Positions 33,427 through 43,582 of a stretch of 64,000 bases of DNA are shown here, one piece after another. Both the position numbers and the translations under genes were made by a program. How positions within the stretch are numbered: position 1 is the first letter of the stretch; every line of letters begins with the position of its first letter. Under the pieces are notes generated by a model. The model ran no database searches. It was not told the origin of the DNA and was given only the letters and a program-made list of their open reading frames with translations. The DNA comes from Anthoceros angustus (lineage: Eukaryota; Plantae; Anthocerotophyta): the NCBI GenBank assembly GCA_010909165.1, contig VJWM01000192.1:1-64000 (forward strand), given 5' to 3'.

Positions 33427-35260
33427 CTAAGATCCTCCAACCTTTACGGGGAACAATAACAAGCCTAGCAAGATTGTTGTCAGAGGGACAGTGACGTTGT
33501 CGTCGTACTTGGTCGTTAACGGGAGGGACTCAACGATAGTGGCCGCAAGGGCAATTGCAGCCACCTTGGGAAAGGCCTCAACCACGTCCAGCTGGAAGAA
33601 GCCCCAGGCGGAGAAGTACCACAGAAACCTGGGACAAAAACATGTAGGTGAACAGTCGGAGTTGAAGAAACAGAGAACCAATCTTCACTTGCAGCAGAAA
33701 CCGTCGTCATCCAGCAGTAGCAAGAAGGATTCCCACACTTACCCCACAGAAACCAGGAAGCCGAAAGAGCACATGGCCAAGCTCCCAGCCCAGCTTTTAT
33801 CTGCGTTGTATGGAAGCTTGAGTCCCCCGTATCGTCGACCCACTATGTCTGCAACACCTGCAAGATTGGAAGCAGGCTACCAATGTAAAACAATGGAGGT
33901 GGAGAGCATGTGTGCATGCAGAAACCGCGGTTAAGAGTCCACAAGTGTTACCATCCCCGCCGCACATCATTGCCAGGGAAATCACGCCGATGGGCGAGTC
34001 TCTCCAGAATAAAATGGTGCTGACCGTCAGGACGATCAGGTAGTAGAAGGGACCCCGCAGCAGTTCTCTGCACCCAAGAACATCCACCTCCACTCAGTGC
34101 CTGACCTGCTGGGCCAAAGAGTAGTCAGGGATGACAAAGCTTTCGTTGCTCCACTCAGGCCAAGGCTTGCAAGAGCATGCCGAGCTCATATTGCCCAGAG
34201 ACTTACTTCGGGTCTCCTTCTCGGCTCATGGAGGCCACAAGACTCTCATTTGCTTGAATCCCCACGGCAGCGACGAGGAATCTCACGATGTTGACAAGGG
34301 GGACCAGTGCTGCAGTGTACCGAGCTCCTGGAGACAAACTAGTAGAGACGACGCACAGACTGTGTGAGGCCAAGTTCGTCCCCTCTGCCGAAAGAGCTAC
34401 TACAAGAACCATGACATGATGAGCACAGCACCTGAAGAGAGGCCAACATGCCAGGTAAAGGAGGCCTGATGAGATGTGCACTAGCTTTCTGCTCAGCTTC
34501 TGTCACACAGCAAGCAACTGTCTCAGACCATGCACGCATGCACATGAACATGCAGTGACTTGGAGACACGGCTGGCTCCTGGCACCCTCAAACCACCACC
34601 AACACGTACTCGCTCAACGATCTTCCGCTGGCCAAGGAATCCGAAGATCTTCACCCACACAACCGCTCCCACCAGAACCAGCCCCATAGCGCCCAAGTCC
34701 TGCGGGAGGTCAGAGAATTGAAAATGCGGCTCCGCAGACACTATCTCCCGCCACTCCTGCTGCACCGAGGCCTGTTGCCCGCTGCTGCACTGCGGCCTGG
34801 CCACACGTCCCGTCCCAGCGGCATTTTCCTTCCGAAGACCCCAACAGCCGCCGGCTCTCCCCTTCTTCCACCCCGCTGTCTGGAATCCTCCTCCAGCCGA
34901 AGCCACCAAGCTCCTGAATTGGCGCCAGCTGCTCCCATTATCCTGGAGCCTACAATCTTCCACTCCACACAGCTCCGCGAACGCAGCCCTGCAGCATTCC
35001 GCGCAGCCCAAGGCAGAGGAATCCACCCAACCCCACCGGCGAGGGCGCGGGAGCTCCGGAAACACCCACCACTGAGGAACAACAGCTCGTGACCGGGCCT
35101 GCAGCACACGTCGTTGCGGGAGAGGAACAGCAACAGATTTCAACGACTGCTGCGCACACGACCAGCACGAGGGACCAGGAAGAGGCACAGCGTCGTGGCA
35201 CATCTTGAGCTGAGGAGACGGCAACGAGAGACGGTTGGAGGCCAGGAAGCTGGCGGCCAT
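33427..35260 (-). CDS. VTE5: Phytol kinase, plastid (multi-exon)
   Basis: KLSRKLVHISSGL, ARYTAALVPLVN, ELLRGPFYY, SPIGVISLAMMCGGDG, KSWAGS and VESLP..DDNVTVPL, with a long transit-peptide-like N-terminus. Confidence 0.88.
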
Positions 35261-35452
35261 AGCTACTGAGCTCTCTTTGCATTAATCTTATCTTTTACTC
35301 ATCCTGTTCATCGGTTGAGTATGTACTGCTTTGCATCTTACCCGTCTCTCGTTTCCGCCTGATCCGTGCCTCCGACACCGCCCATTTCCTCCTAACTTTC
35401 AGATGCATTTTCCTCGCACAGTACGGAAGAGCAGGACACAGATGTTTCAAGA

Positions 35453-37360
35453 TTATACAGTTAGCTGCAGAGACTGCTTTTCAGACTGGAGATTGAGGTT
35501 CTTCATCCTCAAGTAAGCTTTCATGAAGCCGTCCAGGTCCCCGTCCATGATGGCTTGCACGTCTGAAGTCTCTACACCTGTTCGCAGATCCTTCACTAGC
35601 TTGTAGGGGTGGAATACATAGTTTCTGATTTGCTGGCCCCATTCTGCTTTGACAACGTCCCCCCTTATTTCTTTTATCTCTGTGGCTCTCTGCTCTTCTG
35701 CTATGACGAGCAACTTTGCCTTCAAGTACGCCAGGGCTTTAGCCTTGTTTTGCAGCTGGCTTCGCTCCTCTGAAAAGAAGGAGCAGGCATTGCGTTAGGT
35801 GGGGGTGGTAGGTGTGCAAGGGTGGGATAGGGAGGGCGGTGGTGAGCCAGGAGAGACACAAACCTGTACAGCGCACTGAAATGCCGGTAGGAATGTGTGT
35901 GATCCGAACCGCAGTTTCGACTTTGTTCACGTTCTGCCCTCCTTTTCCTCCTGCTCTGGATGTGCTGATCTCGAGGTCGGTCTCAGGAATGTCTACTTTG
36001 AGGGACTCCTCCTCGATAAGAGGCATGACTTCCACTCCTGCAAAGCTTGTCTAGAGAAGTGGCACAGAAGTCAGCATCTCAAGAACGTTTTCTCTGGTAT
36101 GTCTTTGATATGGAGAGAGTGTACCTGCCGCAGACCCTTAGCATTGAAGGGAGACTGTCGAACTAGCCGATGAGTCCCTTTCTCGCTCGACAGGTAACCG
36201 TAAGCAAAACGACCATCCAGTTCTAAGGTGGCAGACTTGATTCCAGCTTCTTCGCCTTCCGAGCTCTCGACTATCCTTGTTTTGAAGCCCTGTTTGTCCC
36301 CCCACCGAGTGTACATGCGGAGGAGCATCTGTGCCCAATCCTGCACTGCAACAAACGGGAAGCATTCAAGTTAGTCACGACCCCAGTATTTGTCAAGGTG
36401 CTGCTTACATCCAAGGAACTTCACCACATTCAGGGACATCAAGGAAGGAGAGGCAACATGAACAGGAACCTGGGCATCAGTCCCTCCTGCTCCAGCAGAG
36501 ATGTACAGGCGAGCTCCCTTCTTGTCATACTGACCACAGAGGAGCTTCGTTAACTCATAACGATCAATACCAGACCTCAGCCATTCCACTATTTGTGCTG
36601 CCTCTTCCAGGAGTGAAGCATCTGCGGACTCCACTTCGTCCAGGAGCTGCATGATCATTTGTGCATCATCCATCTGCAAGCCCAAGGTGTCTCAGTGAGC
36701 AACCACCAGAGCAGACCCCTACCATGGTGTGACTGCGCGCTCACAAGCATCCCACCTTGCTCCTGAAGGCTTTCAGAGTCCCAATATCATCCTTCAAGTC
36801 CCCAAGTGTTGACAGGAGCTGCTGCGCTTTGGCAGGGTCATCCCACAGACTTTCCTCGGCCGCTCGTTGCTCGAGGTCAGCTAAAGTGGCCTCCTGCTGA
36901 GCTAGTCCAGATGACGCCAGGATGGCCTCCACTCGAGAAGCAGCATCTTCCACGTCCTTTCTGATGCTGTAGAATTCTGACCCACACAGAGGACAACATT
37001 TCAGCACTTCATCAATCCATGTTGCTCACAGCCTAGCAGCAACAAGAGCAAAGTAAGGAGCTGACCTAGCTCACGTCCAGATCCTGTGGCTGTTTCCCCT
37101 GTCGCGGTTGACCTGGGCCGGCCAATTCTATTCGACCCATATCCATGGTTGCTGCATGAACACGCTGCACCCACCACAGGCGTGGAGATTCGACCATTCC
37201 CATAAGTTAGTCTGTCACAGGCCTCCGCACATTGTACGAAAACGCGTTGAACGTTGCTGCCAGTAATTACAGCGCAAGGAGAATATTGCAGTTTGAACAC
37301 GACTGGGGCGTGTCTGCAGGGGGACGTGGGAGCGCCGAGCACAGAGAATGACCCCAACAT
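35453..37360 (-). CDS. PrfB1: Plastid peptide chain release factor 2 (multi-exon; start codon uncertain)
   Basis: [26 protein letters not shown] (SPF motif), [19 protein letters not shown] (GGQ motif) and [18 protein letters not shown]. Confidence 0.93.
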
Positions 37361-37958: not shown

Positions 37959-40900
37959 ATGGCTGTTCTGAAGGACCCCTTGTTGCCACCTGGGGATGGG
38001 GATGCTGAAGCAAGGAATCCCGATGCTGGCATGAAGCCTGCAACTCAACGACCTGTCGCTGTGGATTTTCTGTTCTTGAAGCGTGTTTGGAGGTTGATGG
38101 TCATTGCCAGGGCAGGATGGGCATTTGTGCTTGTGATTCTATCAGTTCTCAGCGTGGTAGTTGTGTCCAGAGCTGGTCTGGTCATTGGCCACTTTTATCT
38201 GGCTCTCATCAACAAGGATATGCAGGTAGCGTATCGGGAGCGTAACAAAGCTTGGTTTGTTAGCTATCCATAATCATGAATATTTAGTGTGAATTCAGTT
38301 GTTTGTGTTTATCTTACACCTTTTGTGTGCTTTGCTGACAGCTTCTATGGGACGCTATTCGACTTTCCTTGTTGTGGTATGGGGCAGAGTCAATATGCAG
38401 TGCAGCACAGGTCTGGACAGCTGAGCTCTTAGCTTTACACTGGCGGAAAAACCTTACAGACGCTTGTCACCCTATTTATCTTACAGGTTCCAATCTCTGT
38501 GCACTCAACAGTCCTGTACAGATTATCGACAATCCGGATGAACGTGTGACACAAGAGTTGTATAATTTCTCTCAATCCCTTGCACAATTTATGTTGGAAA
38601 CAATTGCTGCACCACTTATGATAGTATACTATACATGGTGGGTTTGGAAATATGTGGGCTGGTATGGTCCCGTTACTGTATACGTTTTCTTTGTAGTGGG
38701 TGCTACAGTTACCAGGTGGATCATCTCTCCAATTGCAGGTCTTGTTGCAAGACAAGAAAAATTGGAAGCCTTTTTCAGAATCTCCCACGTCCGGTAACAT
38801 ACCAAGTCTTTTCTTAGAGCTTGTCTCGGTGGACCATGACCTTGACCATGAATTTTGTCTCTATTATTCTTGTCCTCCGGCAGTTCTAATGCTGTCTGCA
38901 TATTTGATGGTGACATGGATCATGCAGAATACGTAGAAATGCAGAAAGTATTGCTCTGAATGATAGTGGAGCACTGGAGCAGACTGAGCTGGAAAGAAAC
39001 TTTGGAGCTGTCCTGCTGAACCAGAGAAAGCTGGTTACGAGACACTGTTGGTTAGATTTTGTAACGAAGGCTTACAGTTATCTAGGTGAGCACTTTGTTG
39101 GCTGAATTGAGCTTCTACTGGGCCCTTATTTGTGGAGTTGCGGGTGGTTTACATGCTCGTGCGCACCTGGGTATTTGCAGGTAGCATCTTGAATTATTGT
39201 GTGGTGGGACTTGCGGTCTTCGGGGGACGTTATGATCAGGGATCAAGTGGGGATGTAGCAAACATGATCAGCAACGCATCCTTCTCTGTCCTGCAACTGA
39301 TTTTCAGGTATCCTTGGTCAAGTCATGTGCCTACCAAATTGCTCTATCTTTGCCAACTGTAACAGAAGCTGATAAACGAACTCTGCTCTGCAGCTTTACT
39401 CAGATCATTGAGACTGCCAAAAAGGTTTCTGATCTAGCTGGTTACACAGTTCGAGTTGCAGAGTTGTTTGAAGCACTGGACCTCCTTCCTGCGGTCTCTG
39501 ATTCTTTGCCAGATACCGCTGATACTACTTCACTGAGCCCCAAGAAGTATCGGGTTGCAGAAGTCAAGGACGATTCTGCAAATGGTGGTCTGTCGGAGGA
39601 TTCTGTGGAACCGGATCTTACTGAGTTTCTGGCAATTCCACCATCACATTTTCGTCTCCAGGATAGCAGGGTGCTTGAGTACTCTGTCCACTTCTCGCCA
39701 TCAGAGATTCGGCACATGCTAGCTGGTGTGTTCCCTGAGGTAGACCCGAGGGCAATTTTGGTTATCACCACCTTCCAACCGGCAGCAATCAACCTTTGGC
39801 CTGCTGCCTGCTGTCTGTATGAGGACGGCTCGACGTCACGAGATGCAGAGAAGAGTAATCTGGAGGTGGGGGTACAGGAGGAGATGAGCACCTTGGCCAA
39901 CCTGTTTCTTGCCTGGCAGCAAGAAGTGACTGACAGACTGAAATGTTCAGGACACTGGGCAGATGCCGTACATCCATGGACTGGGCTTCCCATTGGTACC
40001 TCTAGTCAAAGTGGGTCTTTAGAAGCTCCCTCATCCACCTCTCCGTCATCTGCAGAATCAACTGTATTGGAAGTGTCAGATGGGCCAAAGTTCAGACAGG
40101 TGGATGCTGCTCGTGTCCTTTTTGGCTACGCATCCATAGACGTTGGCTGCGGTAACGTCCTAGTCCACCCGAAGTACTTCACTCGCTGTTTTCCAGCCTC
40201 TGTGTTCACAACTGCCCCCTTGGGGGTACTGCTCTCAACAATGCAGTCCGTCCAGGAGGTGTACATATCGAAGGCAGGTTTACAGATGGGTGATGACGGT
40301 GCTGGCAGTGTGGAGGCAACTTGGGTCAGTGAGAATGCAGCTGTGCCGGGGGAGGTTGCTGCCCTTATATGTGACAACCTCACTCTCAAGATTCCGCATA
40401 CCCAACAGCTGATAGTGCAGTCCCTAAGTTTGAGAGTGAAGTGGGGGGAATCCCTTCTCATCACAGGTCCAACTGGTAGTGGCAAGACCAGCTTACTTCG
40501 AGCCATTGGTGGTGTGTGGCCACTGCAATCAGGTGCTGATTCTTGCCACTATCGGTGCAATGTTCCGCTCTTGAGCATAACCCGGCCTGATGCTCCGCTC
40601 TGGTGCAGGAAGGTTCTGGGTTCCGCCTCGGCTCGAGGGGAAGGGTGTGCTGTTCATTCCCCAGACACCACTCCTAGTGAAAGGAGGCCTTGCAGCTCAG
40701 ATCTGTTACCCCGACCAGGATAATTCTTCAACCGAAGTCTGCACACATCGACTTCGAGAAGCCTTACAAGCAGTGGGAATGGTCTACCTGCTCGACAAGG
40801 TGACAGAAGACTGGCAGGTTTGTCGGACCCCTCTCGATGTCATCAGGAATGGATATAGGTAACGTCTTCATCGAGGAACAGGAAGTGATTCTGATATCCG

Positions 40901-41272
40901 TTTGCGCTATGCAGAAACATATTGATATCGACACCCTCTCACCAGGGGAGAAGCAGAGCCTCTCGCTTGCACGCGTGCTGTACCATCGACCACAGCTCGC
41001 GATCATGGACGAAGCAACAAGCGCTTTGAATGAAGAGGCTGAGGTTAGTGATAAAGGAAGGCATCAGGTCAGGGGCACAGTTTGATCGTTTGCTAGTGCG
41101 AAAACTCATTCCGCGGCTTTAAATGATCTGCCCACAGGATCGAATTTACAAGCATATCATGAAGCTGGGTATCACGGTGGTCAGTGTGGCTCACAGACGA
41201 AGCCTCTTTCACTACCACACAAACATTCTGCAAATTCAAGGCGATGGAGAAGGTAGCTGGGCTACTAATTGA
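37959..41272 (+). CDS. ABCD4/CblJ-like half ABC transporter with an internal MMADHC/CblD domain
   Basis: Exons 37959-38225, 38342-38793, 38928-39085, 39181-39307, 39394-40532, 40609-40817, 40915-41043, 41138-41272 (all GT-AG). Membrane domain: [27 protein letters not shown]. ATPase domain: Walker [10 protein letters not shown], signature LSPGEKQ, Walker [17 protein letters not shown]. CblD-like block at ~39635-40250. Confidence 0.9.
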
Positions 41273-42319: not shown

Positions 42320-43582
42320 TCAGGCCCGTCTTGAATTATTTCGTTTCAAAGCTGACCTTTCTAATGAGGAGATGAATTTTCGGAGGTGGCGAATATATTC
42401 TGGATAAAGCTCAAGGTTGCAGTGACCGCCACCTTTCAGCCATAGAGGTTCATACTTTTCCTTACAGAGATCCCACAGCTGCTTTCCATGTGAGCAGTCA
42501 ACAACCTCGTCAGCCGTTCCCTGTAAACAAGCGCACCAATTCAAGCAACAAGCATTAGGTCCACAAGCTGCATAGCCTGAAATTTGCTCAGGCCGTCACT
42601 AAAATCTGAATGATTTTAAGATTCAAAGTGGCCTGGAAAAGGACTCACGTGCATGATGAGTACAGGGCATGTGACCTGCCCAATTTTGTCAATGTTCTGC
42701 AAAGTAACAAGGAGAGCATCACATCAGATATGCATCGCTTCAATTGGGCAGTCGGAGAGGGAGTTCAGGAGTGGGAGGTTTACTTTGTAGATGTCAAACC
42801 AATAAGTTCTCTTCACAGGGTACATAACCCTCAAGCCTGAAAGGATTGGACTATGCAGAACCACTGCTCGCAAGCGGGGCAACCGAGCTGCCAAATCCAA
42901 CGTCGGTCCACTCCCCACAGACTGTCCATACAGGACAACATCTTCTTGCTTCGCTCCATACTGCTTGTGGAGACAGTCGTAAGCTGCTTCGATGTCGGCA
43001 TACGTGTTCGGTTCAGTCGGCTGTAAGCATAAACGAAGGAAGTGTCTCAGCACTTTCTTAAGTTCCAGGAGACGTAGCCCCTGAAATCAATTGAATCCAC
43101 ACCTGACACACTATCAAGAAAAGCTAACCTTTCCAGAAGACGCTCCGTACCCGGTATAATCGTACCTACACAATTCAAAGAACAAAACAGGCGATTACGC
43201 CGGGCCGGAAGAAGGAAGCCGCGCAAACCGCGTTGCAATACAGTCCCGGAAGCTGGCCAAAAGGTGTACAGAAAAAATACCCTAGCACATTGACATGAAG
43301 ATGCACACTGAGCTCCACAAACAGCTCGTACATTTGCCCCAAATCAGCTGCATTCCCATGCGAGTAGAGCAGCGTGAGCGTCGCGGACGGGTTGCGCACA
43401 TACAAGGCTATGATATCCTGCGCCCGCTTAGTACGCAAGCGCAGCACATCCACGTTGTCTCGCAGCGGGACGTCGGCAAACCTCAACTTCCCCGTCAGCT
43501 CATCAGTCACCACCCTATACGACGGCGGATTGGGAGGGAAAAATGCAAATCTAGCGGCCACCGAGGATGTCACTGCTCCCAT
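42320..43582 (-). CDS. ABHD17-like alpha/beta hydrolase (acyl-protein thioesterase), 5 exons
   Basis: [57 protein letters not shown] and GGHCNLE. Confidence 0.95.

Follow-up and report, generated by a model that had tools for sequence, protein, structure and literature searches.

Whether an exporter of B12 and a chaperone of the same cofactor can form one protein is the question raised by a locus in the hornwort Anthoceros angustus. The window analysed is a stretch of 64,000 nucleotides (contig VJWM01000192.1), and its initial annotation, made from the sequence alone, described an ABCD4 (CblJ)-type transporter with a MMADHC (CblD)-like domain inserted between the transmembrane domain (TMD) and the nucleotide-binding domain (NBD). 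On the plus strand, positions 37959-41272 of the window hold an eight-exon gene of 871 codons with GT-AG introns of 76-134 nt. Its features are listed below, with their basis in brackets; L001 denotes a second hornwort-like genome.

37959..38225, plus strand: exon 1, with the start codon, the cytosolic N-tail and TM1 (gene model and spliced contigs)
37968..37985, plus strand: dileucine motif LKDPLL, of the LxxxLL / [DE]xxxL[LI] type for vacuole/lysosome sorting (motif scan of N-tails)
38342..38793, plus strand: exon 2, ABC_membrane_2 domain, top PDB match ABCD4 (Pfam, PDB search, spliced contigs)
38928..39085, plus strand: exon 3, TMD and start of TM5; Tyr291 corresponds to human Tyr279 (gene model, spliced contigs, residue mapping)
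39181..39307, plus strand: exon 4, TMD, TM5 to TM6; Tyr298 corresponds to Tyr286 and Phe327 to Phe315, with Gln331 at the Tyr319 position (gene model, spliced contigs, residue mapping)
39394..40532, plus strand: exon 5, end of the TMD, linker, MMADHC-like domain, linker and start of the NBD (gene model, Pfam, spliced contigs)
39485..39664, plus strand: variable linker 1, TMD to MMADHC domain (28% identity to the L001 orthologue, dN 0.85; low pLDDT in a full-length relative)
39665..40267, plus strand: MMADHC/CblD-like domain, nitroreductase-like fold with two hornwort loop insertions (Pfam, PDB matches, model, structural searches)
39884..39886, plus strand: Met at the human Arg197 position, CblC interface (PDB alignment, residue count)
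40148..40150, plus strand: Cys587 at the human Cys261 position (cobalt ligand), with Gly at the Cys262 position (PDB alignment, hairpin count)
40268..40357, plus strand: variable linker 2, MMADHC domain to NBD (L001 comparison; low-confidence linkers in the model of a relative)
40466..40492, plus strand: Walker A (gene model, motif mapping)
40609..40817, plus strand: exon 6, NBD with the Q-loop (gene model, spliced contigs)
40915..41043, plus strand: exon 7, ABC signature LSPGE and Walker B with the catalytic Glu (gene model, spliced contigs, motif mapping)
41138..41272, plus strand: exon 8, H-loop and stop (gene model, spliced contigs, motif mapping)

Exon 5, at 1139 nt, is bounded by AG and GT and reads open throughout in a single frame that begins as TM6 ends and reaches Walker A. 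In four runs, from four organisms and four studies, single spliced contigs have all seven predicted introns removed and positions 39391-40529 continuous, and because these contigs are joined across introns the runs are taken as RNA. The ABCD4-MMADHC fusion gene is expressed. The spliced contigs of these four runs and four organisms hold no splice joint that removes the MMADHC insert; the initial annotation had raised the possibility that ~39635-40250 is spliced out, and exon 5 is whole in all four. Three relatives with ~95% identity differ over exon 5 by substitutions and by one in-frame 18-nt insertion in linker 1, and their frameshifting 1-nt indels are confined, in the contig comparison, to the region 5' of the exon 1 ATG (37959). 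Merged gene models or a retained intron are ruled out as the source of the fusion by this one exon, intact in the spliced contigs of four organisms, and the in-frame 18-nt indel and the identical exon 5 borders in L001 also stand against them. The uninterrupted 1.14-kb exon that the annotation had drawn from the ABCD membrane domain to Walker A is thus borne out by the open frame and the spliced contigs, as is its statement that the fusion is not the product of two merged gene models.

On the minus strand, head-to-head with the fusion gene, lies a spliced gene (35453-37140) resembling peptide-chain release factor 2 of the organellar type, with Pfam RF-1/PCRF matches; L001 has the same gene, exon 5 borders and release-factor neighbour in the same head-to-head layout (blastn 71%). 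Beyond it, also on the minus strand, exons at 33797-35281 with a transit-peptide-like N-terminus presumably belong to a phytol/farnesol kinase of the VTE5/FOLK type. An alpha/beta-hydrolase gene, with a weak Pfam Hydrolase_4 match and ABHD17-like by eye, is placed tail-to-tail on the minus strand at 42323-43582. One more contig, at a depth of 13.8, aligns over 38782-40945 in short stretches of the TMD and NBD only; the sequence between them is dissimilar, and the contig is probably another ABCD paralogue.

The identity of the insert rests on profile, sequence and structure. Exons were searched one by one, questions of full-length fold and search were answered with database relatives, and the joined 871-aa model was used in local scripts only. 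By Pfam, exon 2 matches ABC_membrane_2 (6.5e-30) and exon 5 reaches 37.7 bits for MMADHC against a cut-off of 27 (insert taken by itself, 41.1; E 2.3e-10), after which ABC_tran begins, so that the three domains stand in the order that had been anticipated. Against PDB sequences, significant matches of the insert are confined to MMADHC chains of mouse and human, in three collinear stretches. An AlphaFold model of the insert, made without templates from an alignment of MMADHC relatives, has a pLDDT of 85.7; human CblD is its best match by Foldseek (E 1e-9), and in an exhaustive structural search it scores VIA Z 17.8 against human CblD, with an rmsd of 2.3 Å over 147 residues, the next fold having a Z of 7.3. 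Chance similarity is ruled out by these four lines of comparison, and the annotated nitroreductase-like core of MMADHC is confirmed. Its length requires revision: the ~200-aa insert reported holds for the folded domain (~39665-40267) only, the whole spacer between TMD and NBD being ~290 aa with both variable linkers, as compared with 24-72 aa in unfused ABCD4. In the model of the Chlorokybus fusion, whose top structural match is ABCD4, three confident domains are joined by two low-confidence linkers, and by predicted topology the insert faces the cytosol. Together, the single open exon, the Pfam match, the fold and the spliced contigs show that the original observation was right.

The same architecture is not confined to one genome. 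Exon 5 was compared by phmmer with 1.84 billion cluster representatives (50% identity clusters), and local domain mapping of the best 150 shows MMADHC joined to ABCD parts in 33 of these 150 clusters; 25 have all three parts in the order membrane domain, insert, NBD, and eight are fragments with insert and NBD. Members include Spirogloea, Mesotaenium, Closterium, Chara, Chlorokybus, Mesostigma and Riccia, as well as Chlorella A99, Micractinium, Tetraselmis, a pedinophyte, Chloropicon and Picocystis; among the best 150 clusters, Zygnematophyceae, trebouxiophytes and Pedinophyceae are thus represented. Pfam independently recovers the three-domain order in 8/10 fusions tested, and does so more weakly in some others. 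The search for like architectures that the annotation had proposed is therefore answered in hornwort-like L001 and the streptophyte algae, and also in chlorophytes; a hornwort-specific novelty is ruled out by its presence across green algae, Chara and Riccia. Word-index homologue searches gave 2, 3 and 4 relevant matches and are weak, with no bearing on absence, and the same applies to the ESM Atlas, where no large cluster has the TMD-MMADHC-NBD architecture. The commonest named phylum in the top atlas MMADHC cluster is Cyanobacteriota, which may reflect mislabelled records or real bacterial homologues; to our knowledge, MMADHC is described as absent from bacteria. MMADHC domains also occur in long proteins without ABC parts (P0150, 822 aa; P0034, 490 aa), and other CblD fusions may therefore exist.

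In a tree of TMD and NBD the fusions form one clade (100) that branches as the species tree, the A. angustus protein being sister to that of the liverwort Riccia sorocarpa within the streptophyte clade. This clade joins animal-type ABCD4 with a support of 99 both by SH-aLRT in a quick IQ-TREE run and by FastTree, and peroxisomal ABCD1-3/CTS form a separate clade (100). A tree of the inserted domain splits fused from free MMADHC at 97/87, with a free Volvox protein among the free ones. One fusion has the label Pavlova lutheri but falls within Picocystis, and contamination is its probable origin; all fusions without a named source nest among green ones. As the fusions are one clade grouped with animal ABCD4, they probably derive from a green-plant ancestor, and the fusion is apparently ancestral to Viridiplantae. 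The simplest reading of these trees, with the best 150 matches covered, would be that the domain was duplicated and inserted once, no later than the divergence of chlorophytes and streptophytes.

The assignment of the host as an ABCD4 (CblJ)-type transporter is upheld by the TMD match and the clade with animal ABCD4 at 99. An identity as peroxisomal ABCD1-3 or COMATOSE is ruled out by the TMD, whose top match in the PDB search is ABCD4, and by the separate clades; whole-protein phmmer does put CTS at the top, but CTS has two units and their scores are summed. Numerous ABCD-like transporters of two units (full-length), some with N-terminal dileucines, fall outside both the ABCD4 and the peroxisomal clades (P0087, P0028, P0029, P0130 and relatives). 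The cobalamin pocket of human ABCD4 (PMC13434180) was mapped onto the fusions through sea-urchin ABCD4. Tyr68, Tyr279, Tyr286 and Phe315 are found in 100% of scored fusions, Asp329 in 84% and Asp278 in 72% (most others having Glu), whereas in peroxisomal ABCDs Tyr68, Tyr286, Phe315, Asp278 and Asp329 are at 0%, Tyr279 alone being common to both. The aromatic ring at Tyr319 is needed for transport by human ABCD4 (PMC13434180). In fusions this position is never aromatic, and it is Gln in the A. angustus copy; one turn away, position 322 is Tyr, Phe or Trp in most fusions, and an aromatic residue there could possibly compensate. The A. angustus copy further has Ser at Asp278, Glu at Asp329 and Ala at Val60, and differs also at Pro64. 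Its Walker A, signature, Walker B and H-loop are intact. We infer that B12 would be the substrate of the fusion transporter.

Sorting of human ABCD4 depends on LMBD1. Among algae, CblF/LMBD1 is almost restricted to dinoflagellates according to the main text of Dorrell 2024 (PMC11439496). The N-tails of the fusions are unalignable except for a dileucine, found in 11/13 full-length fusions (mean 0.8 and maximum 5 in 5000 shuffles) and also in 8/28 other ABCD-like N-tails. In plants and yeast, a dileucine of this type directs proteins to the membrane of the vacuole (PMC3355574), and the motif is an indirect hint that the fusion may reside at a vacuole- or lysosome-like membrane.

Although the fold is that of CblD, the residues by which human CblD acts are altered. 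Human Cys261 is the cobalt ligand, and the C261S change abolishes both CblC-B12 binding and the loading of methionine synthase; Cys262 frees the cofactor through disulfide formation (PMC12501144; 10.1101/2023.07.25.550549). Hairpin Cys were assigned by their spacing to a conserved His-Pro, which may be off by one residue where a row has indels. On this basis, free MMADHC domains have the 262 Cys in 38/38, as part of a Cys261-Cys262 pair in 24/38 and as a single Cys in 14/38. Of the fused domains, 24/33 have a Cys at 262, 1/33 (the A. angustus copy) has one at 261, and 0/33 have the pair. A hairpin Cys of either kind is present in 25/33, the L001 copy and Picocystis being without any. The Arg197 position, of minor weight in the human CblD-CblC interface (PMC12501144), is Met in 18/19 fused domains and Lys or Arg in 31/32 free ones. 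The fused domain is therefore taken as a paralogue distinct from free CblD, in keeping with the 97/87 split in the domain tree. Without the pair, single-thiol ligation of B12 would be possible in most species, with the human unloading chemistry absent, and the loss of the pair together with Met at Arg197 suggests a tethered domain for catching or docking, not a full substitute for CblD. The export and handoff unit envisaged in the annotation accordingly stands in part: the MMADHC fold is cytosolic, but handoff in the human chemical sense is not supported, given the pair at 0/33, Met for Arg197 and the L001 hairpin without Cys.

Between A. angustus and L001 the MMADHC core has 55% identity, with a dN of 0.37 and a dS above 1.5 (saturated), the linkers ~30% identity with a dN of ~0.8, and the NBD 74% identity. 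The lower dN of the core relative to the linkers, at this dS, places the domain under purifying selection that is weaker than that on the NBD. The two hornwort copies have loop insertions in the domain, differ from one another at the Cys hairpin, and have Gln at a Glu244-like site where every other domain has an acidic residue. In the one liverwort available, the R. sorocarpa orthologue (L002 3001-6938), TMD, pocket residues and dileucine look intact; its 285-aa spacer holds a decayed MMADHC remnant with 24 bits to a local profile, no Pfam match and no Cys hairpin. The main text of Dorrell 2024 (PMC11439496) places METH, CblC, CblD and CblJ in hornworts, which also retain MTRR, and only CblB and CblJ in liverworts. 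The decay of the Riccia insert fits this loss of METH, as far as one liverwort can indicate.

We favour, with modest confidence, a reading in which the green ABCD4 orthologue exports B12 from the vacuole and directs its own sorting; its tethered domain would catch the cofactor or dock partners, with unloading left to free CblD. A duplicated CblD domain would have been inserted into the TMD-NBD linker in early Viridiplantae. A homodimeric, ATP-driven exporter, sorted to a vacuole- or lysosome-like membrane by its own N-terminal dileucine in place of LMBD1, would move cobalamin from lumen to cytosol, and the inserted domain, held near the cytosolic exit by a flexible linker on either side, would catch or dock the exported cofactor (by one hairpin Cys in most algae) and/or the machinery of CblC, free CblD and METH; Cys-Cys unloading chemistry would remain with free CblD. 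This builds on an established gene, splicing, fold, clade, distribution, residue pattern and purifying selection on the domain core, and adds to them, as inferred elements, B12 as the substrate, a vacuolar location and a partner or ligand for the fused domain. The place in the ABCD4 clade counts for a B12 exporter, and so does a B12-pathway domain that was fused once and kept in chlorophytes and streptophytes. The decayed insert of Riccia points the same way, as liverworts reportedly have CblJ but neither METH nor CblD (PMC11439496). Pocket residues, intact ATPase motifs, the dileucine and the scarcity of CblF/LMBD1 speak for export at the vacuole, and the three-domain Chlorokybus model with disordered linkers and the conserved domain core for a tethered domain. 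Against this reading count the Tyr319 position, never aromatic, the pocket changes of the A. angustus copy and the inconstant hairpin Cys.

Other readings assign the domain a different part. If it were a fully working CblD, it would form a Co-S bond to accept B12, either from the exporter or from CblC, and load methionine synthase at the membrane; the modelled fold is correct, 14/38 free domains are likewise single-Cys, and the A. angustus copy keeps the Cys261 equivalent, which in human is enough for stable complexes with CblC and METH. We nevertheless hold this to be unlikely, as no fused domain has both cysteines, 32/33 are without Cys261 (human C261S being inactive in CblC-B12 binding and METH transfer), Arg197 is replaced by Met, the L001 copy has no hairpin Cys, and free CC-type CblD persists in green algae (Volvox). 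Accessory domains regulate the ATPase cycle in other ABC transporters. By analogy, the domain might be a regulatory sensor that slows or permits the ATPase cycle once it has bound cytosolic cobalamin or a partner loaded with B12; its predicted position in the TMD-NBD linker, adjoining the NBD, would suit this, and a domain that binds but does not hand on could do without the unloading Cys and the Arg of the CblC interface, but Cys-less copies would require a different binding mode, and we regard a sensor as quite unlikely. Finally, B12 handling might be algal only, the bryophyte domain being a structural leftover in the course of loss, as in Riccia, or its transporter having changed substrate. 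The disagreement of hornwort copies at the hairpin, their loop insertions and Gln at the Glu244-like site, the several pocket changes in A. angustus, the faster divergence of the core (55%) than of the NBD (74%), and the retention of the transporter by liverworts without METH (PMC11439496, main text) all suit such a leftover. It is made distinctly improbable by the core dN of 0.37 against ~0.8 in the linkers with saturated dS, by the confident predicted fold of the hornwort domain, and by the METH, MTRR and CblC that hornworts keep according to the same main text.

An extension of the exporter reading, which we offer tentatively as possible but doubtful, is an LMBD1-independent B12 relay at the vacuole surface of green algae and hornworts, in which a single-Cys CblD paralogue on ABCD4 would catch cobalamin at the pore and hand it to membrane-anchored methionine synthase and its reductase. 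If true, the chemistry and layout of the relay would be unlike the soluble animal pathway, and it would supply, for algal B12 uptake, the step inside the cell that is missing after CBA1.

The annotation knew of no description of this architecture, and no account of an ABCD4-MMADHC fusion was found in the literature searched, which took in few subscription papers. The early-fungi survey reports no fusion, and none appears in the main texts of Dorrell 2024 (PMC11439496) and its preprint, the former suggesting that B12 trafficking outside animals may differ. ABCD4-like homologues are named as BLAST candidates only (PMC10828217), as is a Chlamydomonas homologue in Sayer 2024. A survey of ABC proteins describes ABCD proteins as absent from Anthoceros agrestis and Chlamydomonas (PMC10513242), which conflicts with the fusion gene in hornwort-like genomes and with PMC10828217. 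Database entries with the Pfam combination bear names such as hypothetical, ABC transporter or ABCD4. The fusion, which unites two known families of the B12 pathway and shows changes specific to its clade, is real, expressed and ancient, and apparently undescribed. As a Rosetta-stone hint it suggests that the functions of ABCD4 and MMADHC are physically coupled, and a chaperone domain fused into the green ABCD4 orthologue is independent evidence that this transporter is the B12 step. It singles out one testable gene for intracellular B12 acquisition in green algae and hornworts, and points to how green cells export B12 from the vacuole. Decay of the insert, in the one liverwort, may mark a loss of B12 use in land-plant evolution.

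Compared with known systems, the fusion is closest to human ABCD4/CblJ, the lysosomal cobalamin exporter (6JBJ, 24VC-24VE; PMC13434180), likewise a half transporter of ABC_membrane_2 and ABC_tran in the same clade. Both have intact ATPase motifs and share Asn141, Tyr68, Tyr279, Tyr286 and Phe315; the fusion differs in its ~290-aa spacer with the MMADHC domain and in the loss of Tyr319. Sorting appears to differ as well, by way of LMBD1 in human and by an N-terminal dileucine of its own in the fusion. Peroxisomal ABCD1-3 and plant COMATOSE (AtABCD1) have the ABCD fold and Pfam domains in common with it, but form a separate clade (100) without the inserted domain or, Tyr279 excepted, the cobalamin-pocket residues. 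In Dorrell 2024 (PMC11439496), the main text gives a CblJ set of hornworts, liverworts and green algae with vertical inheritance, among whose matches the fusion gene is very likely included; that study scored CblJ from ABC_tran and CblD from MMADHC, treating the two as distinct proteins. With human MMADHC/CblD (5CUZ, 6X8Z, 9MRS; PMC12501144) the fused domain shares the nitroreductase-like core, the beta-hairpin and, in the A. angustus copy, the Cys261 equivalent. Unlike human CblD, it is tethered to the membrane within a transporter, is without the disordered N-terminal targeting part, never has Cys261-Cys262 and has Met for Arg197; its clade stands apart from all free CblD, that of green algae included. 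The green design, with its own sorting signal, a tethered CblD paralogue and altered cysteine chemistry, would thus be unlike the human one.
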